64,000 nt of DNA from Auanema rhodensis (lineage: Eukaryota; Animalia; Nematoda): the NCBI GenBank assembly GCA_964057225.1, contig OZ059898.1, positions 7,688,001 through 7,752,000 of the forward strand, given 5' to 3'. The first letter of the stretch is position 1, and each line of letters opens with the position of its first letter. A model generated the notes under the pieces. That model was given only the letters and a program-made list of their open reading frames with translations. It had not been told where the DNA came from and searched no databases. Of this stretch, positions 14,681 through 56,247 are shown in pieces. Made by a program: the position numbers and the translations under genes.

Positions 14681-15394
14681 TTAATTTCGACGATAACTCC
14701 AAATACAGCCTGCCAAGCATAGCAAGAGACATATAAAGGCGAAACATCCACCAATTACAAGGAAAACACTGAAAGTTTCAACATTAGCAATGAAATTGAT
14801 GAGCAACCCTCACATAACCCAAGTTTCCAGTTGGATACAGCATTCCATTTGATTATATGGACAACATGTCCAATGATGAAAGATACTATCAGTTCCACAA
14901 AATCCTCCACCACTGAATAAATAGTTAGGAATAACATGAAATTTCTTAATATACTCATTTATGTTGTTTTGTATTGTTTTCTCATATGAATTTCAGATGA
15001 ATCTCAAAACTTTTTTGAAGTTAATCTAAAGTCTCAGAGCTCCTGCTAAAACACTAAAGAGTTGTGAAAAGTAACCAAAGTTCGTTAAATATACATCAAA
15101 GCTTTAGAATTTCCAAAGATTTTTAATCAAAACTATTTTTATAGCTGAGAGTTGTAGAAAACATTTTAAAGGGCAAAGGTATTTTCTATTAAAAAACCAA
15201 AAATGATAGATTTTACAACTGATTTAAAAGTTATTCGAATATATTTCAGTTAGTTACCCATATCCTCCATAGCCTCCACCGCCAACCATTCCAAGAACTG
15301 AATACAGTCCTCCTCGACAACCGAACATTGATTCAACTATTTGACTCATGACTGATACGAGGAAGAACTGAAGAAATCGAGTAACATTAACCAT
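14681..15394 (-). CDS. Small (~108 aa) single-pass protein: signal peptide, Gly-rich linker, Cys-rich module, TM
   Basis: Not in the ORF track. Three phase-consistent exons give MVNVTRFLQFFLVSVMSQIVESMFGCRGGLYSVLGMVGGGGYGGYG/GGGFCGTDSIFHHWTCCPYNQMECCIQLETWV/IVFLVIGGCFAFICLLLCLAGCIWSYRRN*, with canonical GT-AG sites. Confidence 0.8.
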
Positions 15395-16348
15395 CCGTAT
15401 ATGTAATCTAAATATTTCCCAAATAAAATATTATGAAAATCAAAAAAATTATTGGATTCTAAACAATATGTACAATATAATTTAAAATGAAAATGAAAAA
15501 AAAAATAGTTTACACGAATATTTTCTCAGAATCTTATACAGTTTCACGATGTTATGGCTTCTAGAATATACAGTAATAGCCATGAACTTAGATGAAAACT
15601 GAATCATTGTGATCCATACGATGTCTATACCTTTATTTGTTTGTCTAAATATGATTGTGCAGCAGTAACACAGACAATTCACGTCGCTTCCTTTCTCAAA
15701 ACTATTTTTCAAGAGACACGATTTCTAGAGTACAATTTGTACAATTGCCGGAGGGTAGAAAGAGTAATAGTACTACTATTTAATAATTTTATAAGAGCTT
15801 TGTAATGTAATATGAAGTTGAGAAAAGTAGAAATTCTATATAAATGGTTCAAATCAATATAGATTATATATAATAATTGAATTATATTATAAGATAAATT
15901 AATAATTTATAAAAAAAATAATTAAATGAAACATAGTTTGATAAGAGAGTAAGATGAGAAGTAAGATGACAAGTTTTAAGTATAGTTCGACTTTGAGAAC
16001 TATTCTGCAAATACAAATGAAATGGTATGCCTTGAGGCAATCAACCATGAATGACCAATACAAAATCGTCAAAATGCTTGTGATCTCGAAAAGCAATCAA
16101 AGAATGTCTTGTTATCCAACCATAAATTTCTATTGTGTGAACATTTGTTATTATATTGATAATATTGAAAATATTGTATAATCATCATATTCGTCAGAAT
16201 GTGAGAATAAAAAATATTTTAGCTTCATTCAAATATTAAATATTTGTAACTTCTGACATTGAACTCTTGTATATAAATCAATATTAAAAAATAAACAACA
16301 ATTTTCTTTCTAAGAAACTGTGCTTTTCTAAAATTCTTTTATATTTTC

Positions 16349-16750
16349 AACGAATCGTTACCGAACTATACTATATGTACATGTATTGTCGAAATAAGTA
16401 TTTATATCGTCTGTATCTCGACATCTATACATTTCCTGGGTATTCGATCGTTCGATTAATGTATTTCCTTTCTTGTGAAGAGCGTGTCTGGTTACTTAAT
16501 GTCTCGTTCTTGAAGAGATCTTTGTTGCCACAACTGTTAACGGACAGTGAACCGTGGTTGTAACAAAGCTTATTAACTCGGCACACAGTCTTCCTGAGTC
16601 GTTTTGTTCTGCACAGAATAGACTCGCCCTTTTTGGGATAAGTTCGGAACCAAAGTAGAACTTATCTACTAATCCTATTTTCCCGCCATAGGATCACACT
16701 TTTTTGTACCTCGGTCACGACATGCATATAGCTAGGATAGGCGATTCGTT
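16349..16750 (+). ncRNA. Unclassified highly structured RNA-like element (~400 nt)
   Basis: The 5' and 3' ends pair (16349-59 with 16740-50; 16371-84 with 16720-31) and enclose at least 7 local hairpins. About 8 G-U pairs form on the + strand. No credible spliced ORF. Confidence 0.55.
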
Positions 16751-21175: not shown

Positions 21176-23381
21176 TTATAATTCGTCTTTCTTTTGGAAA
21201 GATTTAACTGCATTTTGTTTCATAAAATCAGTTAGATGATCCAAAGCACGGTTTCCATTGTATTTAATTGGCTCGGTCTAAAAATAAGATTATTAAATGT
21301 TTAAAGCGGTGTTAGATATCTTACTTTCTTTCCACTAGGAGCAAAGTAAATAGTTGGGAAACCTTCAACGTTATATCCAGCGGGAGCATCATTTGCTGTA
21401 GCATCGAATTTAGCCAAAATAAGATTTGGCTCTGTTTTTTTCAGCTTGGTAGCTAACTCTTTCAACTTTGGTTCAAAAGCCTGAATAAGAAAAAAATAAA
21501 TGTTTCTTCATGCTCAGATAGTATACCTTGCAATGTCCACACCATGGAGCATAGAATTCTATGAGAACATCCTTTGAGTCATCCATTACAATTTTGTCAA
21601 AGTTAGATCCAACTAAAGTCTTCACAGGTCCCTTATCATCCTTAGGCACTGGAGCAGATTTAACAAATGCTTTAGCTTGTCCAGAGCTAATCTTTTTCAT
21701 GAAAGCTTCAAGATTTTCATCCAATTCTCCATCATATATATCAGAATTCATTGGATACTTCTTTCCATCATAACCGAAGACAACAACGTTGTGCTCGAGT
21801 CCAGAGTCGCCGAGTCCAACTTCAGTTAACTCTTTAGAAAATTCCTCTTCGTCCGCTACAGCAAATCTATACTTGTCCTTCTGATACTATAAATATTATA
21901 GATTTAGTATTGTCAATTCTTACAATACTTTTAACCATACCTTTTGGGCAATATTAAGAACTTTTTGACGCCAGTACTCGCTACCCTCACGATATTGAAT
22001 ACTGAAGTCAGCATTGTAGTAAACTACAACAAGTGGGAATTTGCTATAACGAGTAGCAGCGTTAGATTTGGTCATTTTTCCTACAAGAGGAGCGGAATGA
22101 TCACGGAAGAAAGCCAAAAGATCCTCGGGAGTAGATCCAACCTAAGATGTATTATTGTAATTAAGCCAACAATGTATAAGTTACCTTGTTGTAGGTACGA
22201 GTTTTTGGTTCAAATTTACTGTGGAATAGAGCTGGATAAAAGATGATAATATCATTTGGCTTGGCATCATATTTCTTGAAGGATTTTGGATCAGATGTAT
22301 ATCCCATAGACTTGAACTCTTCACGGAGCATTTCAGCAGCATCACTGTAAGCCTCAAAGTTCGAAGAATCCTTGCTGGGAAAGAAGCCAACAATGGTGAT
22401 ATCTTCTTTGTCAAAGAATCTATAGTATTACGTTATGCATTTCACTTATTAATGAAAAATGTTTACTTTTCTATTTCTTTAATCGACTTCATTTCCTTAG
22501 CAGCAGGCTCCGCTTGCTTCAAAAGATACTGAACAATGCCATTGGCATCACGAGGTCCTTGGTATTCAAATCTAAAAACTGTATAATTAGCCGAGTGGGT
22601 TTGATATATTTTTTACCTTTTTCCTCCTCGCATTATTTTCATTGTTGGATATCCAGAAACTCCGTATTTATCTCCTAATTTCTTTTCAACAGTAGCATCA
22701 ACCTTGTAAATCTTGATATTTGTTCCCTTATTTTTCAAGGTACGGGCAGCTTTTTCAAGCTCAGGAGCCAATTTTTTACAATGTCCACACCATGGAGCAT
22801 AGAATTCAACAAGAGCGAGAGCGTCCTCGGCAATCACGGAATCGAAGTTTTCCACAGTCAAAGCCATAACCTCCTCAGGTGGTGGCTTGTAGTTAGGATC
22901 AACTCTTGGACTGACCCAGTCAATAATTCCTTGCTCATCACGACCACCATCGTAATCAATTGGACCTTCGCCATCCTTCCAGAACTTAACTGTTGGGTAT
23001 CCCTGCAATACAACTATAAGCAAAATAACAAAAAAGGGCTTTAACCTCAATCTTGAACCTTTTGCCCAATTCCGTTTCAATCGTGGCATCAACTTTGGCT
23101 AGTGGAATTGAAAGCTTACCAGCAGCTTTTTCGTATTCGGGTGCTAAGTGTTTACAATGACCACACCTATATTGTATAAATATTATTCAGATTCAAATAA
23201 AACTTGCATACCACGGAGCATAAAACTTCACCAGAGCAGTAGGGTTCTTTTTGAGAAATGAATCGAAATTCTTATCGGTTAGAATAACAACACCCTCATC
23301 CAACTCATATTGCAGCTCTTCTTCTTCTGCTCGTGACACTGCCACCAAGAACCATAGATAGGCAAGAAATTGCCACCGCAT
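21176..23381 (-). CDS. pdi-4: Protein disulfide isomerase A4 / ERp72 (C14B9.2-like)
   Basis: Signal peptide, three [10 protein letters not shown] thioredoxin sites, C-terminal KDEL*. Confidence 0.96.
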
Positions 23382-25026: not shown

Positions 25027-25489
25027 TCTAAAGTATAACAGATTATATTTACTTTTACATGATAATGAAGATGATACAAATATAAACAATAATAATATAT
25101 ATAAAAGAAATTCATGAATTGGCAAGGCTCCAAGCAACCGCCCGCAAGTATACTGTATTTTTGCTTATATTCGTCTCACATGGAAAAACCGGAAAATAAA
25201 TTAGGCTAGTCCTTTAAGGTTCTCATTTTAGCAGAATCGCAGTTTTCCCAAATTTTTTGGGTTATATTTTTAAATTTTTGTCTTCTTTACTATATAATAG
25301 GTTATTTTTTCTCAAAATGATAAAATATTTTGGTCTAACAAAGTAGTATTTGAAGTGTTTTCTGTGATTTTCACGATCTGGTATACATTATAATTGATTT
25401 TGAGTTATTGGAAATCTTCTATATTCATTTTATTGGCTTAGTCAAATTTGGTTGTTTATTTTTTGTTTTTTATAGGGTACCTTAGTAGG

Positions 25490-26057
25490 ATGACTAACTC
25501 AAAGGGTCTTAGACGCGGTACGCGTTATATGTTCGCTCGCGAATTCCGCAAGCACGGAGTTGAGCATCTTTCCACCTATTACCGCTCATACAGACGCGGA
25601 GATATCGTTGATATCAAGACCAATGGAGCTTTCCAAAAGGGTATGCCATTCAAGGCTTACCACGGAAAGACCGGACGTGTCTTCAACGTCACCAGAGGAG
25701 CTCTTGGAGTAATCGTCAACAAGCGCGTCAAGTAAGTATTTTGTTAAAGTGAATTTAATTTTAATTTTTTTTTCAGGGGAAAGATCCTCCCAAAGAGAAT
25801 CAACATCCGTGTCGAGCACATCAAGCCATCTACCTGCCGTACTGACTTCCTTAACCGTGTTAAGGATAATGATGTCAAGAGGTAAATAAGTTTGATATAT
25901 CGATTTCATTTGGTTTTTTTTTAGAAAGGAAGCTAAGGCCGCTGGAAAGCCAGTTCCTCAATTGAAGCGTCTCCCAGTTCCACCACGTGCTGCCCACATC
26001 GTAAACGCTTCCGAGATTGAGACTCTTGCTCCTCTCCGCTACGAAATCGTAGCTTAA
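25490..26057 (+). CDS. rpl-21: 60S ribosomal protein L21 (eL21)
   Basis: [23 protein letters not shown]...[18 protein letters not shown]...APLRYEIVA*. Three exons. Confidence 0.98.
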
Positions 26058-39706: not shown

Positions 39707-41192
39707 CTAATTATCTCCAACTCTTCCTCGTGTTTTGAAAAGACGATGTGCTTTATTTGAACTGTTCTTCCAGCGAAGATCGAATCTTCTACGATAACTG
39801 TCGATGTACTTAAGATCACGCGCAATTTGATGAGCTTGTCTTCCTATACATATTATTCCGTTAAAATACAAAAATTTAAATACTACCCGTTGTATTTGTC
39901 CAAGCCAAAGCAGGAAGAATTCCTTTGGCTCTATCAATAGCAGTTCGCCCATGATCCATTCGCTGACTAGCAACGGGCTTAATATACTGACGATAATAAA
40001 TCATCAGGCCCCTGTGTCCAATTTTTGCGCCTGAAACTACCGAATAATATAATATCTAATGTAAAGATAGACCTGAAGGTAAGGTTAGTGTCCAACCATC
40101 GTCATATATCACATCAGTAGACGACTCTTCTCCTTCATACATGGGACTATAAATTAAATATAGAAAAAAACAGTCATTAATTTTACCTGTAGTCATAGAA
40201 CTCTGCAAACTCTAGCATGCTTTGAGGATCCCTAGCTAACTTGCAATGTTCCTTGTCTTTCATATGTTTTTGGCAAGAATCAACGGTAGCAAATCTGCTG
40301 CGTATATCAGGACAATATATGCAGCATCGACCAGCTCCAACTTTCAAACCTATCACACAACTATTATGGGGAATACATGTAAACTTAGGTACCGAGGTAA
40401 TGCATAAGTCCCTTCTCATCAATTAAATATTGCTTATCCGGTACAATGAACCCATGATGAAAACGCATGTGCTCCATTTTTTCTTCCATGGTGCGCTTAT
40501 CTTGTGGACAGAACAAACACTTTGTGATGGGAATAGCCTAATAATTGTATTAGTTGCAGCAGAGAAAATGTTTAGTACTTGGGATTCATCGTAATCATAC
40601 TCCTCTTCATCAGAGCCATTATCAGTTTCCCAGCCAGTACTATCATCGTCATCATCATCTTCTTCATCCATGACAATATCATTAACATTACTAGTGATGA
40701 CAGGGGTACTGGTAGGGTCTGCTTTCTTGAACGATCGAAGAATTAGACATTTTAAAAAATAAGCAAACCTTCCTAGGCTGTTTAGGCCCCTTCTTCTCTT
40801 GATTCTTCTCTAGTTCTTTGTGTTTATTACTAGCAAAATGATTATCCAAAGCGTTTTGTGATTTTAAATTTTTTTTACAAACTTCACAATAGAAACTTTT
40901 AACAGCATTCGCCTTATCCTGCAGGAAAAAATTAGAACATTTGATATTTAATCCGTAAAACCAACCTCTTTCTCTTGTTTGAAGTTTAAAACTTTATCCC
41001 TGAACTGTTCAGCTGTTACAGGAGGCAAATCAGCAACCTAAATATTATTTTCAAAACTCGTTTTCTTGATTAACTTGCATTTCTCTTCATGTTGTACCGA
41101 TGCCAATCAGATCGGTAATGATCTCTTTGAACATCTGCATTTTGGAAAACTAGATGGCATGTAACACATGTTAATCCTGTTGAAGGATCCAT
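39707..41192 (-). CDS. ZNF622/Rei1 pre-60S maturation factor (C16A3.4-like)
   Basis: MDPSTGLTCVTCHLVFQNADVQRDHYRSDWHRYNMKRN/VADLPPV, CQKHMKDKEHCKL, TLTLPS/GAKIGHR.LMIYYRQ. Confidence 0.93.
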
Positions 41193-42849: not shown

Positions 42850-45800
42850 CTATACATCTAGAAATTGTACAACTTGGTTCACACATTCGTTTAACACATC
42901 AGAAACCGTCTTTATGTCAGGATTATGTACAGGTTCCTCTTCCTCGTCACTCCACCAATTTGGATCTTTTTTACTTGAAAGGTTCACCACAGGATTAGAT
43001 TTTTTCTTTCTCGTCTCTTCACTATTGCTAGTTTCGTCATCACTACCTAAGACAGAGAAGAAATTTTGTTGCTTTAACGGTGCAGGCTTTGCGATTGTAA
43101 CCGGCAGTCGTTTAAAAACCTAAAAGAAAATTACTCATACAAATGTTCTTTGTTGCTTTGGAACCTTCTTAGTAGATTTCAGCAATTTCATTCCTTCTTC
43201 AACGGGAGCTGGCTCTTTCTTTACTTCGTCGATCAAAGTGCTAAAATAACATTCAGTTCACATTTGGTTTAGTATAAGAAGTTTTTACTTCTTAAGAGTA
43301 GTAACTCCAGCTGCTTTGAGCACAAATGGATATTTGCGTAAATCGGTTAAACAAATCAAAGGAATTCGAGAAGAACATCTAAAAAAATTAATTTGAAACT
43401 CAAGCAGAATAAATCTTATAGATAACCTCCTTGCTGTGACAATAACACTTCTTTTAGGTGGATTATCTACACTAACAGTTGTCATGTTAAAGAGATTGGC
43501 ATATTCGTGAATGAACCTACGCCGTTCTAATGGCATAGGGCGGAATGAATGCGAAAGACCCTCAGATATAGTAACCTAAAAATTCTTTTAATACAGGATA
43601 CTTTCGTGTAACTAACGTCAGCGAATTTGTTGGCTAAAGCACAAAGAATACTTTCTACTTCAGAAACAAATTGAGGGTTTTTACGGTATACTTCCTAAAA
43701 TCAACATATTGAATAACTACTATTGCTTTTCAAATACCTTTAAACTCTCTGTAAAAGTTACTGTAGGTTCCTCTGTCTGTAGATCTTCATCTGTTACAAT
43801 AGAAAGAGCATCCGCAAGCTTTTTGTTCCTAGCTACTTTTTTACAATCTTCATCACATGATATACTAAAAAAATATGTATACATAATCAATTTCAGAGTA
43901 TTAGTAAACCATGACAGCTTTTCCATGCTTAAAGATCTTATTAAAACCCCAGGATGACCACCCGGAACTTGTTTTCCTTCCTCAGCTACAGCAAGAGCAG
44001 CATTAACTCTCATAATAGCACCTACAGACTAAAAATATTCAACATAAAAGTAATATATGAAATGTGTGCAAACCTCGTAGCATTTCATTTTGCTCTTTCG
44101 ACGTCCACAATCACAGGTAACCTCAACTGAATGCATACATTTGGTTTCGGGGCATTCTGCATTAGGATGACAAGCCATAGCGCAAGGATGTTCACAATTT
44201 TCTCTCAAAGCATTGCAAGGTCTCTTACAGACAGCATTTTCCTAAATATTTGAGTATGACAAAATTAAAGCGTATAATAATATTACTTCTTGACAAGCTC
44301 CAGGATGGCAGTTTCTGTCACATGAATGAACACCACAAGATAACGGCTTTCCACATAGTTTTCCACAAGAAACCCCAGAGAAATGACAAGGAATATTTTT
44401 GCGAATTTCATGCCCACCATAGCAATATTTTTCAACTAATGTGGTACAGGGGGGACAATTTTGATCCGAGTGGCACCGATGAAATACTGGATGATTACAA
44501 GAATGCTCACGAGCACAAGGCTCATCACATGGTGGAGGTGGTTCACCACACGGAATTGGAGGTAGACGGACAGTTTTCCCGCAATGACAATATTGCTCAG
44601 TAAAGCCTGGATTAAAAAAAGAGAATGTAAACTATTAGTGACTTTTTAAAACTCACTGGCATTCAAGCATGGACGGCATTGTCCCGAATGGCAAACGAAT
44701 TCACAGAAATGTTGCCCACAGGCTAATCTTCTATTACACAGCTATAAAATATATGTAATTGAAAAACTATACAAATTAAAATACTTGGAAACAAGTGAGA
44801 TCATGGTCAACACAGCAAAATTCTTGACATTTATGTACTCCACATGATTTTTTTTTACGGCACTTTTTATCGCAAATCAACTCATTACGCTCTGCAATAA
44901 ATTATGAAGTATCAAAACCCTGACATATAATTAGAATACCATTCAACCGGTTAGGAACTTGTGAACATGGAATTTCTTCAGTAGTTAGCTTGCATCTGCA
45001 TTCAATTCTTGTAACATCTTCGCATGGTGGACAAGGACCGACATGACATTGTTGTCGACAACGATGAGCTTTAAACAACATTTTTATATGAAAAAATTGT
45101 TAAACCTACTTTGATCTCCACAGAGTAAACGCTTATTACAAGTATTTGCACATGTAGGTATTGGATCAGCACAAGAACTTCTCGAAGCGGACATAGCTTC
45201 TAAACTCATTTTTCCACATGGGCAGTGAGTAATCCTTTCAGGGGCTGTTGGACAAGAACCACAGCCTTTAGTTATATCATGACATCTGAAAAAGTTGGAA
45301 TTAATTAAATCGGAAAACAGTAAAATTACCGAGTGGTGCAGGAATGAATTCCACACTTGTATTTACCGGAACAAGGAGAATCACAACTGTATTTATCATT
45401 TTCATTTATAGATATATCACACTCTAATTCCTTGCTATCTTTACCACAATAACAATCTGAAACACGTATAAATTAGTAGCGAAAGATAAAGTTTATAAAT
45501 TTACGTTGAATTATTTTCACTTCGCATTCGTTACAAGAGCCCTCATGACAATTTTCAGCACATTCATGAACTCCACAAGCCAGAAGTTTACCACATTTGT
45601 TTGAACACTAAAGAAGTATATTAAGATATTATAAATCTAAAAACAAACCTTAATTGACTGTCCACATCTAACCATTCTAGTTGTAGAACCACAAAAACAA
45701 ACTTTCATTACTTGACTAATACAATCTGGGCATGGACCAGGATGACAGGGTTCATTACAAGGATGAGAACAATCTTCTCCTCTTTTAGCTCCGCAAATGC

Positions 45801-47085
45801 CTCCACAAGCATGGGGCCTTTCTCCACTTCAAAAAAAAAAATAATAGTTAAAACGACAAAAACCTACACTTTAGTCGTTGGGTTTTTCTGTTTTCCACAG
45901 TAGCAATCGTAGAAAGGAGTTTTGGTATACTTGGCCTTACATGCTGGACAATTCCAACTTGAAAAAAAATTTTTGAAATAATTAAGGGTAAAACAACTTA
46001 CAATCCTTGTTCTCCTATACTTTTAGAAGCCCAATCAAGAATACAACCGCCAGAAATGTGAAATACGTGGTAGCATTCTTTACAAGACCAAACTTTCTAA
46101 AATGAAGTTGAATAAATATAATGTAGATAAATATTACTTGGCGAGGTCCGATGTTCTGGAAACAAATCATACACTCATATTTATTATTTTCTAATTGAAA
46201 AATTAGTCTTTCTGAAAAAAACATTATTATATAAATTTCACGAAATTCCAGAATTACCTCTAAAAGATAAAGAATCAACGTCTACAGACACTCTCTGTCG
46301 ATTTTTTCTTTGTTGTCTAGGTTTGCTAGCTTTACTAAAAACACCAGTGTAAATTGATCAAAAAATTAATATTCACTCACAAAGTTTGCGGCCTCTGTGG
46401 ATCTGTATTTCTAGATGTTGATGGCTTGTTTTGGTTAAGTTTTGAATCATTAGATTCATTTGGAAAGGGACCACCAGGTTGAAAAACAGGGGCATTTGCA
46501 TTGAATGGGAATGTACGACTATTTCCTGTATTTCTTCTATTATTTCGTCTACCTTGTTTAGGTTTTTCACTGAAAAAACGGTTTACACCTATTGATCACT
46601 ATTGAACATACTTTACTCCATTTCGTGTGAAAGAAGTAGTATCAAGAGAGACACTTGAAGGTACAACTTGTGTTGTTTCAATTCGTTCTCTTTGAAGAGG
46701 AACATGAGTAAGATTTCCTCCAGAATAATTTGGTTGTCTAAAACCTCTGGATCCTCCATGTCCTCTGTTAGAACCTAGACCTCTATGCGATGGTCTAGTA
46801 TTTTGATTAAAGTGGCGCTTATTCTGAATATTAGGAACATTTTTAGAGTCATCATTACTTGTTGTAGCATGGAAATTTCTGGAAACAAATTATCTTTAAC
46901 ATTTCAAAAAAAAAAAACACATACGTTCCTCTAGAACTTGAAGGCACATCAAAGTCTTCTGCAACAGATACTGCTACAGAAGAACCCTGATTATTATTTT
47001 TTGGCCTATGACGCCTTACATGTCTTGGTTTTCTTCGTTGATCTGTCTCAGACCCAGTATTATTTGTTTCAGATTGGGTGTTCAT
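42850..47085 (-). CDS. nfx-1: NF-X1-type zinc finger protein with RING/PHD, NF-X1 Cys repeats and an R3H domain
   Basis: YECMICF...WSCKECYHVFH, multiple C..LL.CG.H.C...CH.G.C repeats, R3H (HSFRPMPLERRRFIHEYA...DNPPKRSV). Confidence 0.93.
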
Positions 47086-48074
47086 GAGGAGATGTAATCC
47101 TGATATAGCGAGAAATAAGGAAATATTTACATTAAAAAAGAATAAAAACAATTATTATAAGATGAAAAGAGAGAAAAGATAAAACAATTCACTTTTTAGA
47201 AAATTTAACAACTATTTTCTTATTTTCTGAAGCCCTTAGCTTATATATGATCCCAATCGTTTGCGATTACCATTGTGAATCGTGTCACATTGTTGTGCAA
47301 TATTTCAAACACTATCTTTACAGATGTTTGAAAAACTCCCGTCAACATAATTTTCGTTGGTTTTTTCTTTACTTGTGATTCAACTTTTGAATATTACTAA
47401 AGCAATTGAAAAGTTAATGTGTGAAACTGATTTATCAGAATCAATTATTGTTTATTAACATAAAATAATTCTGTGTATATAAGACAATGTATATTACGGT
47501 GACATTTCGATATATCTCGGACAAAGTGAGGCTATTCAATAAAATTTCTAAAAATTAATAATAATATTTAACATGTTTGAGTTAAAAGAATTTTAAAATT
47601 AGGTGATATTAATAATAATCTAATATATCATAACAATACTCAATTTTTTTCAAATCAGCCTTTGGTGATTTAATAACAGAATTATTAAAAATATTTCATC
47701 CACCCTGAATTTTCATTTTTTAAGTTATGTATAACTGCTTTTAATCCTTAGATAGCAACTATAAGAAACATTGCAATAACATTCATTATATAGTCTTCAC
47801 ATTCTTCACAGAGAAGATATTAAAAATTGTCAAAAAGGTCCTGCAACGCAGACGCGATACCGTAATTCAAGTGAAGCGGAGAATTCTTTTAGGTGGATAT
47901 AGTATTTCCAAAGGTTACGAACAACTTCAATTAATACTCATATCGTTCAGTTATCTTTATTTCTTTACATTTCTGGTAATATAGTGCGATTTTTACTTTA
48001 TCTCTGGTTATCTTATATTATTGCTAGTATCGCCAGTAACGCCGGATTTTTACTTATAATATTTAGAAGTCAAC

Positions 48075-48691
48075 ATGGGTCGCATGCACAATCCAGGAAA
48101 GGGTATGTCTAAGTCGGCATTGCCCTACCGCCGCTCTGTTCCTTCCTGGTTGAAGCTCTCCAGCGAGGATGTGCAGGAGCACATTGTTAGACTCGCCAAG
48201 AAGGTTTGTAATTGTGTTGGGTTAGAAGGTTCGATTCCTGATATCACCAGCACTTGCCGAATTACTCGTAGGGGTTTATTAGGCACATTATGAATAACAT
48301 GTGTTAAGTAAAATTGTTTTAGGGTCTTCGTCCATCCCAAATTGGTGTTATCCTCAGGGATTCCCACGGAGTTGCTCAGGTCCGTCGTGTCACTGGCAAC
48401 AAGATCTTCAGAATTCTCAAGGCTAAGGTTCGTCTTTCTTTAAATTTATTTTTTATATTGATGTTTTAGGGTATGGCCCCAGAAATCCCAGAGGATTTGT
48501 ACCATCTTATCAAGAAGGCCGTCTCTATCCGCAAGCATCTTGAGCGTTGCCGCAAGGATATCGATTCCAAGTACAGACTTATTCTTGTTGAGTCTCGTAT
48601 CCATCGTCTTGCTCGTTACTACAAGACCAAGAAGCAGCTCCCACCTACCTGGAAGTACGAGTCTGCTACTGCTGCCTCTCTTATTTCATAA
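48075..48691 (+). CDS. rps-13: 40S ribosomal protein S13 (uS15)
   Basis: [18 protein letters not shown].../[16 protein letters not shown].../[15 protein letters not shown]...[11 protein letters not shown]. Introns 48204-48321 and about 48428-48469. Confidence 0.98.
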
Positions 48692-48804: not shown

Positions 48805-51800
48805 ATGGCGTCTATGAAGGTTGGTTTTTATATAAATTTTAATGTTTGGAAAAATCCTTGATAGTGAGTTATCATTGGAACTTTTAGTTATTGTTTCGTA
48901 AAACTGATGCTGACATCGGAACAGGGAGTTGTATTTTTGCCTGGAGACCTCTTAGAAACTCTATAGCTGTTGCTGGGTAGTTCATAAATTAATTTTGTAT
49001 TGTACTGAATTGAAAACTTCAGTGGAAATAACTCTGTTCATCTTTTTGAAAGACGTGGAGAATTAATAGATGCCCTGGAACTTACTTCGTAAGATATTTT
49101 AGCTCCTCTCGTAATGGATAGTTTCTATATAGCAAAATTATTGGAATATCATGGGATCGTGAAGGAGATGTATTGGCTATTATAACAGAATCTACATCAC
49201 AGTTGTTACTGTGGGACTATAATACCAAACAAGCTGATGTGATAGACATAAGTATGGGCTCACGGTAAGATATTGTCTTTCAGCATCATAGTTTTGTTAA
49301 TTGTTCAGCGAAGTAGCTTCATGTGTAGCATGGTCAAACCATGGACCTCTACTGGCGTTAGGTACCCATAATGGAAATCTTTTTATATATAACCATAGAA
49401 CAGCAAGGTAAATGCTGCTAATTATAAAAATTGTTAGAATGCATAATCACAGAAAAGTTCCAAGTATTGGTAAGCACCAAAGAAAAATCACAGGTGTAGT
49501 GATTACAAGGTTAGATCAAATAGTAAGCTGCTCGGAAGATAATACAATTATAGGTTAGCTATATTACTTTTGAGTTTTGAGATAGAAAAATTAGTTTGAA
49601 AATTCTATAATGACTTGTTTTAGTTTCTTCTGTGGATGGAGAAACGTTAAATACGTTTCCGGTTAGCGGTATCCCTAGTCAGTTGAGTGTAGGAGAGATA
49701 AAAAAAGGAAACGGATCATTTGAAATAATTGTAAACATTTTTAAAATAAGTTCCCATAAGCTACAACAGTTTATAGATCAGCTCAGTTTTATCGGGGAAG
49801 ATTTTATTTTTCATGCCGATTGATAATGCTGATGCTCAAACAAATTTACAATTTCAAGAAAAATATGGAAATATTGTGTCGTATAAATGGTATGCGGATC
49901 CTAAATATTGTTTTGATAAATTTTACATTAGGTATAATGAGGGTTTAATTATGCTTGGATTTGATAAAGGATTCATGGTTATCATATCAGCTCATCGCTC
50001 TGAAATTGGAACGGTAAATTTGTATTTCCATTATATTTATAATATAATTTTAGGAATTAAATTGCTTCGCTGAGTATAAAACTTATTTAAGTCATGTAAC
50101 CACTAATGAAGTATTTCAATATATCATTAACATTGGAGATAATCAGTAATATAAAATGAAGAAATTGAACTAATTTATTTATTGTAGAATCCGTATTCGA
50201 GATATGGAACAAAGTCAAGATTTACAATTAATGACCGATATTGATACTGATAAAGGTATGGTATTTTCTCAAAACAAACAAACTTTTTTTGTTACAGAAT
50301 TAGATAAAGTTGAATGTTCATCTGATGGCCAATTAGTATGTGTATCATCCATATCTGGAGCAATTTCTGTATATTTAACACGCATGCCGATATTGACAGC
50401 TGCTCGTGGTGATATTATAGCGATTTTAACTTCACTGACTCAGATTACTATACAAAGAGAAGGAGATAGAGTACAATAAAAATTTTGAAATTATTTTCAA
50501 AAAAATTTAAAATTTAAGAATAAAACTAGAGTTGTCGATGTGGCTGTTGAACCAACATTAATTGCCGTGGGCCCATACTACATCGCAGCTACAACGAATA
50601 ATAAAATTTGGTTTTATGAATATCCCAACAGTAAGTTTGTTTAATCATTTTTTTTTTGAAAAATAACAGAAACTTTTATATTTTGATAATGGTAATCGAT
50701 GCCTATAAAAATATATTTAGGTAATACTGGGCAATTGGTAAGAGAATGTGAATATCTTTCAACAATTCTTCAAGTATCATTAAATGCAGAATACGCAGCT
50801 GTGGTAATGGAAGGAAAAGTTCGCCTGCATAAGGTAATATTTTTTCTTCAATAAGAATTAAAAATATGAACTATTTTTAAAGATTTTGGACAAAGATGAT
50901 GAGATTTCAATCACATTTCCTGAATCATCGAGAAATGCAAGACTTATATCTGCTTCTCTCACTAGTCATTTTCTTATATTCACTACAGATGTAAGTATAG
51001 TTTGGACTATATATCTATATTATATTTCAGTCGAACTATGTCATATACTTTTCATTGGACGAATGGGCTGTAGTCAGTGAATATCGACATGCATCTTCAA
51101 TCAGACACATAACTCCTGACTCGAGTGGCTTGCGGTGTTGTGTTTTTGATGAACGCATGGATACCTGGGTTTACAGGCAAGAAAAATATAAATTGGGAAA
51201 AAATTGATCTTTTTAGTCCTGTAGATGATTCAATGCTTAAACTTCCCCCGATTGGTCCTTCCGTTTTGGTAGGGTTAAATTGGTATTCAACTAACTATTT
51301 AAAATTCAAACTTATAGTATACATCAGCTTTATGGGAAACTTTTACTATTGATCGTAACACATTTGTTGTATATGATACAAACAATATTTATGTTTTTCT
51401 CGTTTCCAAAAGTCAAGTTGAAGGTGTCAAAAATATCTAAAAAATGCTTGTTAAAAACTTATCTTTAAGGAGAATCGATAGTATTTATTGGAACAACCAA
51501 GTTGCCTTATGGTAATCAACCTCTTTTACTAAATAAGGTAACTATACTTATGTATTTTATTTATTTTAATATCATTTTAAAGGGAATTGTACAATGCATA
51601 ACCTCTAACGGAAAAGTAAATGGTGTTCTTTTAGACAGTCATAGAACTGATACTATATTAGAAAACAAAAAGAATGAAGAGGTAAAGTTTTATTTCATAA
51701 ATAAACTAATACTTTACATTGTTGAGGTACGAGAATTACTTAACAAGGCTCTTACTTTGCGCAGGTAGTTCTTTCTTTTTTCTTCATTATACAATTTTTG

Positions 51801-54800
51801 GAATTATTATAAGTTATTCAACGAGCATCCCATGCTCGTAATGGATCGCCTGAAGGTTGATTTATTGAAGTTGCTGAAACAGGCACTAATGAAGGAGTTT
51901 GAGCTTCTACCCTGGAGGCCATGTCTGAATTTAGCGTTAAAAATATTTTAATTAATTTTAAAATTTACTTCTTCCTGTTGATAAGTTGCTTGACCTATCT
52001 ATAATTTAAAAATATGATATTAGAGTTTTAATCAGGCAGACTTACTATTCAACTCTAATGGTGGTTGGTCATAACCATAGCCTGGTGATTGAGGAACTGG
52101 CGCATTAGTATCTGAATAGTTAACTCTTATCTTCAAAAATATGTTGAAATAACGTACTTTCTGATCTTCGGGGAGGCTGTGAATCATAATAAGATGTCTG
52201 CCGTGGATTATTGATATTCTGAATTATTTGTAAAGGTGTAAAATAATAATATGTTTGCATACAGCTGAGAAGGCAGAGTTGATGTTGTTTTCTGGATAAG
52301 GCATTCCCGCTGTGCGATAACGCATTTTTTTATACATTTTACAAGCAAAAACAAGTAAAATTGCTCCTAGAAGAAGACCCTAAAATCAAATGTATTACCT
52401 AAAGTTAAAATAAATAATATACATTACCTCAATTACTGCAAAGACTACTGCTGCTGAGTGATTATTAACATGTTTTACGGTAGTACTTTCACTGTGAACA
52501 ATCACAGAGTATATCATTGTTGCGTTTATTTTAAAACTTTCAAATGAAGTGTTAGTAGGATTAAATTGAATGACTGGAATTTGAGTAAGTGAAACAATCT
52601 TTGGATCGTTGTTTGTTGTAAGATTCTTGATACTGTATGTGAGATTGAATTTAGCATTATATACATCTTTTGTTTTAACAGATGACATGTTATAATTCAA
52701 AGTGAATATATAAGAATCAAACTTTTGAATTTGATCGGCAGCCTATAAAAATGATTTATAATATGATGAATAAGAAATAAATTTAAAACTTACATCTATA
52801 ATAAGATAATCATTCTTATTTGTTAACGCATTTACTTTAATTGTCTTATTTTCTTTATCTGTCATAAGCTAAATTTATATATTATATTTAAAATTTAAAA
52901 CTAAAAAAGCATACTTGAATACTTTCAAAACTTCTGGACATATTATTACTATCCCATGGATCAAATACTAATTCCAAAGATTGAAATTGCATATATACTT
53001 CTTGAATACATCTTACAGAAGAAAATATTCCAATAAGTAAAAAGTATAATTTCATTCGTTTTCTAAATATTGCAGATGGAACTATGCTTGGAAAGTGTGC
53101 GAACGAACGAACAATTTGGAAGATTGGAATCTTTTCGCCCATGCAACGCTTCACGCGTCTGATGTCGAGCTAGGTTTGTACAAATAATACAAAAAGATTC
53201 AAGCATTTAAAAACAATATCACATTAATTTTTAAAATAAAAAAGTGTCTGTTACATGAGTAAAGCGTATGATTAACTTTGAAATACTGCTAGCTGATATG
53301 CCGCTTATCAAGCAATGCATATGCTTCTCTCCAAGCATAAGGAATCAATAGGTGCTATTCGGGGCGATGTATTGAGGAGTACGAAATAGGATGACGTCGT
53401 TTAAGAATAATGATATCAATAATGTGATAAGAATCTTCAACATACAATTGTTCCAGCTCTTCGAATTTTTCGACATATAGGGGATGTCTCAATGGTTTTT
53501 GCTTTGGAACGATTATTGCCAATCGAAGACAAAAATCTATTAGCTGGGCAGGTATAGCAAATGTGAGATTGTCTGCCAAATACATATTTTCATCAGATTG
53601 CTGTGCTATTAGGCAGATTTGATCAGGCTGAACAACTTTTTCTTAAAAGCTCGGAGCCTATAGAGGCACTGAATGTAACAAATCTTAAAATTTTATCAAT
53701 CATTTGGTTATGTTTCTTTAATTTTTAGTTAAGAAGAGATCTTCTGGATTGGCCAGTAGCATTAAAGTTAGGAGAGCAATTAGCTCCTGATGAAATTCCT
53801 TATATAGCTAAAGAATATGCCCAACAATTAGAATTTGTGTCAGTTAATTTCTCATAGAATGGGAATGTTAAGTCCATATAATACTAATTATTTCAGTGGA
53901 GATTATGCATTAGCTTTAGCTCATTATGAAAGAGGAGTTATTGAGGATGATAATAACACAGAAAAAGTGAGAAAATATATTTGAATTCATTTTAAGTTTC
54001 ATTTAAGGTGATGGAACATAATGAGGTTTGTGGTTCAGGAATTGCTCGAATGTCTATACGTACTGGAGACATTCGAAGGTAATACATTCATTACTTATAT
54101 TAATTTATTATCCAAATAATTTTTATAGAGGAATTCAGTTGGCTAAAGAACAGGAAGGACGATTAGTAAAAAGAGATTGTGCTATTGCATTAGAACAGTT
54201 AAAAGTATGATTTGTATATGTTATAATGTTATTGACATTTTTTAAAGCAATATGGAGAATCTGCTGAACTCTATGAATTAGGGCAGTACTATGATCGAGC
54301 AGCAGCCGTCTGTTTAAAGGCTAAAGCATGGTATATAAACACAATTGTATGCATCTAATTAAGTTTGAATTTAGGGGTAAAGTTGCGGAATTATTACCGA
54401 AAGTTAGGTCTCCGAAAATTCATGCCCAATTTGGAAGAGTAATGGAATCAGAAAAAAAATATAAGCAGGCTGCAGTGGTATGGCAATGATTTATTACTAA
54501 TTGTTTATTTTTTGTTTTCAGGCTTATAAGAATGCAAGAGACTATGATAACCTTGTACGAATCTTACTTGATCATTTGGATCAAGCTGAAGAAGCAGTTA
54601 ATGTTGTTCGTGAGAGTAGAAGTGTAGAAGGTGCAAAACTGGTGGCTAAGTTGGATTACCAAACCCTCTATATTTGTTAAATCGGTGTTTAAGATTCTTC
54701 TCAAAGTTGGGAGACCACAGTTCAGCTATTCAATTCCTTGTGATGTCCCAATGTCAAATGGAAGCCTTTCAACTTGCTGAAACAAATGATAGAATGTTAG

Positions 54801-56247
54801 ATTATGCTAATGCTATTGAAGGTTTTCTATAAGTTATACTTCAAAATATTTGTAAACAAATAATATATAGATTGTGGTACACCTGATCAGTTTTCTCAAT
54901 TGGGAGAATACTTTGCTAATATAGGTGATATGGTTAACAGCGGAAGATTTTTCATCAAAGCTGGTCATTACAATGTGGTTTGTGCTCTATTCTATTATTT
55001 TAAGCTTTCATTTGCAATTATAGGCTTTGAATCATTTAATGCAAGCTGGTGATGTTAATGAAGCATATTTACAAGGTATTGATGCAGTTGCCAAATCTGA
55101 AGATCAAGGTTTAATAAACAAATACAAAGATTATTTGATGGGGGAATTAGATGGTGTTCCAAAGGTATGATTAAACTAAATATTATTAATTGAAACATCT
55201 TTTAAGGATGCACATTATCTTTTCCGATTCTATGTAGCTTTAAAACAAACCAAAGAAGCAGCAAAAACAGCAATCATTATAGCAAGAGAAGAACAAGAAA
55301 CTGGAAAATATGCAAAAGCCCGAGACGTCTTATTCTTCATGTATCGTGTAAGTATTGCCATTATATGATGAAAGAGTAACAATTATTGAATTATAGGAGT
55401 TATCAGCTAAACAAATTCGTATACCTCTCGAAATGGAAAATAATCTTATGTTAATACATTCATATCTTCTTGTCCGGGTTAGTTTTTGAGTTAGATTAAG
55501 AAATACATTACTTGGGTCTTTTCTTCTGTAGGTTCTCATGAATAAACAGCAGTGGCTTAGAGCTGGAAGATTAATCACGCGTGTGGTAGCTAACATCAGT
55601 AGATTTCCTTCTCGTATAATTATAAGTTTTTATATTTAGTGAAATAATTCTTTTCAGATATTGTTCCCATTCTAACGTCTTCAGTTGTGATATGTTCTAA
55701 AGCTGAGCTTCACAGCACAGCTCTTCAATCAGCACTACAACTAATGAATCCAACATATCGAAACAAGATTGATGCTAAATATAAGAAAAAAATCGAATCT
55801 CTCGTCAGGTTGAACACAAATTGAATTTTTATTTTATAAAATTTTCTTTTTTCTTTAAGAAAGGGAGAACGTAAGCCTGATCCTGAAGATCCGAAAACAC
55901 CATGTGTATTCTGCCAAACTCCTTTGCCAGAGATGGAACTGTATTGCAACAACTGTAAAAATCACCTTCCGTACTGTATCATTACGGTACTTACAGTTCC
56001 TATTCTCTTAATAGTCATATTCAATAATTACAGGGACGACACATTGTTTTGAACGATTTTTCATTATGTCCTTCTTGTGAATTTCCCGGATATTATTCAG
56101 AATTCAAACGGTTTGTTAAATAACATAGGTGATAACAAAAGAAGTATTTGTAGCATGGAAACTTGCCCACTTTGTAATTCTTCATTGAAAGAAGCGATTC
56201 CTGGAGATATATCATCATTTCTAATTAAAATAAATCATACATTTTAG
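48805..56247 (+). CDS. dyf-2: IFT144/WDR19 intraflagellar transport complex A protein
   Basis: About 40 small exons. WD40 N-terminus ([36 protein letters not shown]), TPR region ([29 protein letters not shown]), C-terminal LPYCII/TGRHI zinc region. Confidence 0.97.
51818..53055 (-). CDS. sid-2: Nested antisense type I membrane protein (~300 aa); putative SID-2 orthologue
   Basis: Eight phase-consistent exons inside dyf-2 intron 51765-53075. Signal peptide [16 protein letters not shown]; ~160-aa ectodomain rich in N-glycosylation sequons; [24 protein letters not shown]; basic stop KMYKKMRYR; Pro/Ser/Tyr-rich tail ending [10 protein letters not shown]. The gene model is high confidence; the sid-2 identity comes from position and remembered motifs. 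Confidence 0.72.
53304..53431. promoter_or_regulatory. Two TGATAAG (ELT-2-type GATA) sites upstream of the nested sid-2-like gene
   Basis: CTTATCA at 53304-53310 and TGATAAG at 53425-53431, both within an enlarged (283 nt) dyf-2 intron, 53174-53456. Confidence 0.5.

Follow-up and report, generated by a model that had tools for sequence, protein, structure and literature searches.

A gene nested antisense in a dyf-2 intron of an Auanema-type nematode, probably a sid-2 orthologue

The absence of sid-2 has long been invoked to explain the resistance of most nematodes to RNA interference (RNAi) by feeding or soaking, an explanation that was overturned in 2024 for strongylid parasites. A 64,000-nucleotide (nt) stretch of Auanema rhodensis DNA (contig OZ059898.1 of assembly GCA_964057225.1, positions 7,688,001 to 7,752,000; hereafter the window, meaning the whole stretch analysed) carries a complete gene that lies antisense within an intron of dyf-2. 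Is this gene sid-2, and if so, does its presence indicate uptake of double-stranded RNA (dsRNA) from the gut, as an earlier note on this DNA had proposed? We compared the gene and its product with the published SID-2 proteins, with the nearest orthologue, and with the corresponding intron of other nematodes. The nested gene is very probably orthologous to sid-2 and comes from a free-living rhabditid nematode of Auanema type.

The nested gene and its likeness to SID-2

The host intron of dyf-2 occupies positions 51765-53075 of the plus strand (1311 nt), exactly the interval named in the earlier note, and splits an Arg codon (AG/A; a slash marks a splice site throughout) between ...KALTLR and RWNYAWKVC. 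The preceding dyf-2 exon ends at 51764 (donor AG/GTAGTT) and the following exon starts at 53076 (acceptor ttgcag). The minus-strand coding sequence (CDS; 53055-51818) comprised eight exons, which gave a spliced open reading frame of 912 nt encoding 303 amino acids (aa) from ATG to TGA, in agreement with the earlier description of a complete eight-exon gene of about 300 aa. All of its introns were GT..AG introns of 44–51 nt with TTTCAG-like acceptors. The CDS nearly fills the host intron, leaving margins of 20 nt and 53 nt at its two ends.

The N-terminus of the protein is hydrophobic (aa 1-16) and was predicted to be a signal peptide. A single hydropathy peak at approximately aa 168-190 corresponds to one transmembrane (TM) helix, which is preceded by eight N-x-S/T sequons and an ectodomain of approximately 150 aa. 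Ahead of the TM, Cys occurs just once, as C16, where the signal peptide ends. The helix is split by the phase-0 intron 3 directly after a mid-membrane Glu (AVIE/G), and the cytoplasmic tail of 113 aa contains 14 Pro and terminates in DPLRAWDAR. All of the peptides that had been quoted (three His within 13 residues before the TM, KMYKK, a Pro-rich tail, and DPLRAW) were present. The product would be a 303-aa type I membrane glycoprotein with a fast-evolving, N-glycosylated ectodomain and a conserved TM and tail.

The view in the earlier note that homology surveys have generally missed sid-2 outside Caenorhabditis has been superseded. With a vesicle protein of Heligmosomoides bakeri as their starting point, Blow et al. 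(2024; Open Biology, PMC11538922; bioRxiv 10.1101/2024.07.03.599821) collected the sid-2 orthologues of 17 clade V parasites through their nesting in dyf-2. They defined the SID-2 family by this nesting, by its architecture, and by the conservation of its TM and tail, in contrast to an ectodomain that is not conserved (PMC11538922). The sequences of their Table S2 (with a few duplicate entries) and their File S1 alignment of 28 rows served as the comparison set. The window gene lies antisense within a dyf-2 intron, as do the genes collected by Blow et al., and hydropathy and the sequon count gave the SID-2 architecture, type I and single-pass, with 303 aa against approximately 300–360 aa in SID-2.

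The TM of the window protein contains the A-[VI]-I-E-G core with its mid-membrane Glu. In Table S2, AVIEG occurred 15 times and AIIEG 13 times, and in the alignment they were found in 14 and 10 rows, respectively, together nearly every row. A run of 19 consecutive TM residues was identical to the SID-2 of Haemonchus contortus and occurred exactly once in Table S2, and an 11-residue word of the window protein was found in six Table S2 sequences. Around the TM, from NNHS to YP, 30 of the 41 positions were equal to those of H. contortus when compared by eye with File S1, and the word RTAGM was present unchanged in the alignment for H. bakeri and for H. polygyrus. The tail blocks RTAGM-YP, YYD, PPLEL, TPSLVPV, and DPLRAW followed the published order (by eye and by exact words); the window forms QTSYYDS, PPLELNN, TPSLVPV, and DPLRAW correspond to NTVYYDN, PPVRLDSL, TPNLVPV (also MPVSATS), and APLNYW of strongylids. 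The proposal that this is a SID-2 which simple searches miss but which its place inside dyf-2 gives away is borne out by the TM 19-mer, the AVIEG core, and the tail blocks.

The SID-2 proteins of strongylids, such as H. contortus HCON_00089550 and H. bakeri HPOL_0001199201, are also encoded antisense in a dyf-2 intron. Like the window protein, they consist of a signal peptide, a glycosylated ectodomain, a single TM, and a tail that is disordered and rich in Pro, in which the blocks R(T/A)AGMYP, YYD, PP.(R/E)L, TP.L.PV, and PL..W occur in the same order. The window protein is shorter than the H. bakeri protein (303 against 358 aa; the other strongylid rows are similarly longer) and stops soon after PL..W, as in Caenorhabditis, without the strongylid ...PVKNIMDSD extension. 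Its gene has introns of approximately 45 nt, whereas those of strongylid sid-2 extend over kilobases.

In Caenorhabditis elegans, sid-2 (ZK520.2, 311 aa, chromosome III) is likewise antisense in dyf-2, a likeness at the level of the host gene. Its product resembles the window protein in architecture, in length, in the AVIEG core of its helix (by eye, 13 of the 23 TM residues agree), and in its C-terminal motif (DPFxxLxxW in C. elegans and NDPFxxLxxW in Caenorhabditis against DPLRAW). The ectodomains are not alignable. Among the C. elegans motifs given in the earlier note, only the C-terminal DPF..L..W was correct; the TM was not, since the published TM reads GGAVAVAVIEGIALIAILAFLGYRTMV. The juxtamembrane and tail sequence of the window protein is far closer to that of strongylids than to that of Caenorhabditis. 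The idea of an old sid-2 that can be traced through its nesting was already published in 2024; because both the nesting concept and SID-2 outside Caenorhabditis were reported then, the window gene is an addition to a known family. It adds a free-living member from outside Caenorhabditis with a compact, fully readable gene structure.

The nearest orthologue was found in Auanema sp. JU1783 as an unnamed annotated protein of 311 aa (GCA_943334845.2, contig CALQYR020007453.1, locus L002, 13617-14855, minus strand), which matched the window protein at 136 bits (phmmer). The JU1783 gene, rebuilt as eight exons, gave exactly 311 aa and lies in the same host intron (...KALTLR/RWNYAWK). All seven intron positions and phases were shared. 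The exon lengths (window/JU1783) were 141/138, 75/75, 315/360, 117/117, 61/49, 66/57, 30/30, and 107/110 nt, and every difference was a multiple of three. Since the exon structure and the frame are kept in JU1783, with length differences in threes, the nested gene goes beyond a chance open frame. The two proteins were 27% identical over the ectodomain, 66% over the TM with the juxtamembrane part, and 49% over the tail, and rough ratios of nonsynonymous to synonymous substitution rates (dN/dS) were 0.42, 0.09, and 0.27, respectively, with dS saturated at approximately 2. By these sequence comparisons, the nested gene is a conserved coding gene under constraint whose outer domain evolves fast. 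The JU1783 protein shares the NINSAFS and DPLRAW blocks with the window protein, and its gene shares the long downstream dyf-2 intron and the TGATAAGCG site described below. It differs in retaining a 20-residue Thr/Pro linker and in having one pre-membrane His instead of three.

The neighbouring ribosomal proteins, as the earlier note had advised, and the gene order were used to place the species, which is neither a Caenorhabditis nor JU1783. The best match of the window RPL21 was Auanema sp. JU1783 (91%), and the order PDI gene, rpl-21, Mcm10, nfx-1, rps-13, dyf-2 was the same in the window and in JU1783. The window RPS-13 was identical to that of JU1783 at 139 of 151 positions and to that of Angiostrongylus at 143 of 151, and thus does not resolve the species.

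The same intron and its promoter region in other nematodes

Further dyf-2 loci were reached through RPS13 proteins, which were found with an alignment of the window rps-13 pieces; this route worked because in many nematodes dyf-2 has rps-13 as its immediate upstream neighbour. In the window and ten loci (545,214 six-frame residues), the motif A[VIA][VAIFW].A[VI]IE occurred six times. All six occurrences were in the dyf-2 intron, on the minus strand, and directly followed by an intron. The scan of the host intron in other clade V genomes, which the earlier note had suggested, revealed SID-2-like genes in JU1783, Diploscapter, and Pristionchus (Table 1).

In Diploscapter pachys, an unannotated gene encodes a protein with the TM ...NKNTGAIVVAVIE, an intron, and then ALLLVGIVVF, and with TPTLMPTSAS and DPFTDPW in the tail. 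Its exon 4 is 117 nt long, as in the window and JU1783. The homeologue at locus L004 (approximately 15040-16612, minus strand) showed seven of the eight exons at 93–97% nt identity, and exon 3 was not located there. A hidden Markov model (HMM) built from the window and JU1783 proteins scored the D. pachys protein at 34.3 bits, a score reached by none of 500 global and none of 500 local shuffles. The annotated nested gene of Pristionchus fissidentatus has the TM NAAAVWAAVIE/GIILIVLVGLCIWVFF (GIILIVLVG after the intron). No PL..W motif was seen at the C-terminus of its product, and the locus is cut before the 5′ end of the gene.

In regard to clade IV, the nested protein of Steinernema carpocapsae contains the TM NTTAVVVAVIE/GLLLLAIF with an intron after VIE, DPLNAW, and an ectodomain Cys pair, and a 12-mer of its TM is equal to that of the Nippostrongylus brasiliensis SID-2. 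The HMM score of this protein was 2.1 bits, which was reached by 25 of 500 shuffles and is not significant. The S. carpocapsae case rests on the TM motif, the intron position, DPLNAW, and synteny. In clade III (Brugia malayi and Dracunculus medinensis), the dyf-2 intron was approximately 130–300 nt long and contained no nested gene.

Because the ATG of the window gene lies 20 nt from the host acceptor, its promoter must lie beyond the adjoining dyf-2 exon (exon A), in the next intron. This intron is also long in JU1783 (approximately 250–290 nt) and in D. pachys (approximately 840 nt). The 9-mer TGATAAGCG was present in the same orientation relative to the nested gene at −255 in the window, −223 in JU1783, and −265 in S. 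carpocapsae, where approximately 0.5 TGATAA hexamers per region are expected by chance; the equivalent Diploscapter region contained five TTATCA sites against 1.3 expected. Gut GATA factors such as ELT-2 bind TGATAA. In C. elegans, SID-2 is found apically in the gut (PMC11538922), and because of this together with the conserved GATA site, the sequence suggests that the next dyf-2 intron holds a gut promoter of the nested gene. Transcription would start in this intron, at a region with the conserved gut-type GATA site, an outron would run antisense across exon A, and the transcript would be trans-spliced a few bases before the ATG. The predicted trans-splice acceptor overlaps the acceptor region of the host intron on the other strand, and an in-frame TAG is located 9 nt upstream of the ATG. 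In JU1783, D. pachys, and S. carpocapsae, too, a sequence resembling a 3′ splice site precedes the ATG by 0–25 nt. The 3′ untranslated region can be at most approximately 53 nt long before the host exon is reached.

These results suggest that sid-2 is older and more widespread than published, including Steinernema and diplogastrids. We lean, with moderate confidence, towards an origin before the split of clades IV and V for a SID-2-type gene antisense in this one dyf-2 intron, with its TM split after VIE and a GATA promoter in the next intron. SID-2 was stated to be apparently absent from S. carpocapsae (PMC5333901), and in 2025 sid-2 was stated to be lacking in the diplogastrid Levipalatum texanum (PMC12530127). 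If the early origin is correct, the published absences in Steinernema and diplogastrids would be search artefacts, and dsRNA uptake would have arisen late, when Caenorhabditis co-opted an ancient membrane protein of gut and vesicles. The common features also provide a recipe for finding rhabditid sid-2, namely to look in the dyf-2 intron after ...LTLR for an AVIEG helix that an intron interrupts, and in the next dyf-2 intron for a GATA site.

Alternative explanations and the question of dsRNA uptake

Several observations weigh against the identification as SID-2. The window ectodomain has neither the two conserved N-terminal Cys of nearly all published members nor the Thr/Pro-rich linker of most of them. 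A phmmer search with exon 3 (105 aa) gave no match among 1.84 billion representative proteins, and the AlphaFold2 model of exon 3 alone (aa 73-177) was all-strand and unreliable (mean predicted local distance difference test value, 44.9; predicted template modelling score, 0.30). The AlphaFold models of the SID-2 ectodomain from C. elegans and from H. bakeri are beta-barrels that superpose at 2.1 Å. The link to the published proteins rests on exact words and alignment by eye instead of a profile score, and splicing, trans-splicing, and expression of the nested gene are predictions from the DNA sequence. The ectodomain of JU1783 contains one Cys and that of D. pachys none, and because these two and the window protein are without the pair (S. 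carpocapsae has it), the Cys pair is common in the family yet not universal. The exon 3 search was empty because that exon carries only part of the conserved region, the rest being in exon 4, and because the ectodomain has diverged too far.

An alternative is an unrelated single-pass membrane protein, specific to this lineage, whose gene came to occupy the same spacious intron and which resembles SID-2 only in generic features such as a hydrophobic helix and a Pro-rich tail. In favour of it, exon 3 is without a match, no Pfam family was matched by exons 1, 3, and 4, and the ectodomain cannot be confidently aligned to published SID-2. A generic likeness does not, however, explain an exact 19-residue run, with a rare Glu in mid-membrane, that is shared with SID-2 of H. 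contortus, nor tail blocks that stand in order. Moreover, the intron after ...VIE is common to five species, the motif is confined to the dyf-2 intron among all residues scanned, and the Diploscapter score exceeds those of all composition-preserving local shuffles. We therefore regard an unrelated gene as extremely improbable. The possibility that the gene is a true sid-2 orthologue that is decaying or silent, with a frame that is open by chance for now and without function, draws on the ectodomain, which is shorter than those of its relatives, has lost the Thr/Pro linker and the Cys pair, and shows a dN/dS of approximately 0.4 with dS saturated. Decay is very unlikely in view of the eight open exons with 14 of 14 canonical splice sites, the length differences to JU1783 in multiples of three, the constraint on the TM and tail (dN/dS of approximately 0.09 and 0.27), and the conserved upstream GATA site.

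An orthologue of sid-2 might also work as in C. elegans, that is, as an acid-dependent gut receptor that takes up ingested long dsRNA by endocytosis, in which case environmental RNAi exists, or once existed, in this lineage. The orthology itself, the three His near the membrane, the GATA site suggestive of gut expression, and the conserved TM and tail that would drive endocytosis are in line with this role. dsRNA uptake has been shown for C. elegans SID-2. In published work, the conserved helix and tail are associated with the apical membrane, vesicle-like mobile structures, and loading into extracellular vesicles, and H. bakeri SID-2 expressed in C. elegans showed such localisation and did not restore feeding RNAi (PMC11538922). 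Uptake is decided by the ectodomain, and that of C. briggsae does not support it (PMC11538922). Environmental RNAi is missing in most Caenorhabditis species that have sid-2, and delivery of dsRNA by soaking, electroporation, and injection failed in Auanema.

The failure of the C. briggsae ectodomain and of the whole H. bakeri SID-2 in feeding RNAi, together with the failure of all three delivery routes in Auanema, argues against the uptake role, as does the fact that the ectodomain, which decides uptake, is only 27% identical even to that of the nearest orthologue. The His cluster is also not conserved: the single His of JU1783 is at the NKH position common with strongylids, where Caenorhabditis has NKNG. 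The inference of gut dsRNA uptake in the earlier note is unsupported, because SID-2 orthologues are mostly without this function and soaking RNAi failed in Auanema. We consider it unlikely that the window protein is a dsRNA receptor of the C. elegans type, and equally unlikely that dsRNA binding by its ectodomain can be predicted from the presence of the gene. If sid-2 is as widespread as these results suggest, the question moves from which nematodes have SID-2 to the ligand of the ectodomain and the role of the conserved helix and tail.

Host gene, neighbouring genes, and annotation

One dyf-2 exon matched human WDR19 in the PDB (8fgw_C, residues 325-373, E 8e-5), which identifies the host, a cilium gene, as WDR19/IFT144. 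The exons that border the nested-gene intron gave weak matches to residues 595-644 (E 1.6) and 664-694 (E 0.087) of human WDR19, and these alignments place the intron in the middle of the gene, between the propellers and the TPR part (near human residue 662). A colinear tblastx comparison with JU1783 dyf-2 resolved approximately 30 exons in the window, at approximately 75–100% protein identity per exon. The gaps between exons were approximately 60 nt or less, with the exceptions of the 1311-nt intron and the 283-nt intron one exon downstream; the host intron is thus the only kilobase-scale intron of dyf-2, as had been noted, and no other exceeds 300 nt. The window has a GC content of 32.5% and introns of approximately 45 nt.

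Table 1. Positions of the features discussed; window coordinates unless another locus is named.
Feature	Locus	Position	Strand	Description
Exon 1	Window	53055-52915	-	aa 1-47; signal peptide aa 1-16 (53055-53008), start of ectodomain
Exon 2	Window	52868-52794	-	aa 48-72; ectodomain; 75 nt, likewise in JU1783
Exon 3	Window	52742-52428	-	aa 73-177; most of ectodomain, membrane-proximal strand, first half of TM to ...AAVVFAVIE
His cluster	Window	~52499-52461	-	within exon 3, membrane-proximal
Exon 4	Window	52379-52263	-	aa 178-216; second half of TM, KMYKK stop-transfer, RTAGMPYP...NINSAFS block
Exon 5	Window	52218-52158	-	Pro-rich cytoplasmic tail
Exon 6	Window	52111-52046	-	Pro-rich cytoplasmic tail
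Exon 7	Window	51998-51969	-	Pro-rich cytoplasmic tail
Exon 8	Window	51924-51818	-	end of tail; DPLRAW 51847-51830, then DAR, stop
Candidate poly(A) signals	Window	AATAAT 51808-51803, AATGAA 51788-51783	-	predicted from sequence
Probable trans-splice acceptor atatttAG	Window	53056-53064 (AG 53064-53063)	-	7 nt upstream of ATG; predicted from sequence
GATA site TGATAAGCG	Window	53302-53310	-	nested-gene sense, 255 nt upstream of ATG
dyf-2 exon A	Window	53076-53173	+	98 nt; 97% aa identity to JU1783; antisense within presumed nested-gene outron
Next dyf-2 intron	Window	53174-53456	+	283 nt, sole other long one; presumed nested-gene promoter region
PDI, three thioredoxin domains	Window	21476-23098	-	neighbour, order as in JU1783
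rpl-21	Window	25442-25732	+	neighbour, order as in JU1783
ZNF622/REI1-like C2H2 protein	Window	40183-40809	-	neighbour, order as in JU1783
NF-X1-type zinc finger (nfx-1)	Window	43700-47200	-	neighbour, order as in JU1783
Nested gene, Diploscapter pachys	L005	14999-16575	-	unannotated 8-exon gene, 396 aa, in dyf-2 intron
Nested gene, Pristionchus fissidentatus	L007, BTSY01000003.1	19040-20942	-	annotated, 376 aa, in dyf-2
Nested gene, Steinernema carpocapsae (clade IV)	L008, AZBU02000008.1	13379-14515	-	annotated, 317 aa, in dyf-2 intron, no Pfam

The annotation of dyf-2 was found to be broken in several of the loci examined. The gene is annotated as two genes (649 and 658 aa) in JU1783 (L002, 10734-13536 and 14963-17954) and also as two in D. 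pachys (L005, 11558-16853 and 17616-20612), and it is split into three models in S. carpocapsae (L008, 10651-13165, 14864-16276, and 16421-17263). The splitting of dyf-2 into two models around the nested gene is thereby flagged as a recurrent annotation error. C. elegans dyf-2 was likewise first annotated in two parts, ZK520.3 and ZK520.1.

In the window, rps-13 (48075-48691) lies directly upstream of dyf-2 (48900-56240) on the same strand. This arrangement also holds in Brugia and Dracunculus (clade III), in Steinernema (clade IV), and in Pristionchus, Diploscapter, and Auanema (clade V), and it is broken in C. bovis, Bursaphelenchus (B. xylophilus), and Ditylenchus. The rps-13/dyf-2 microsynteny is unusually old for nematodes. 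An 82-aa partial "hypothetical protein" assigned to Escherichia coli, encoded on a 248-bp contig, was 83% identical to the window RPL21; this entry is probably nematode DNA that contaminates an E. coli assembly.

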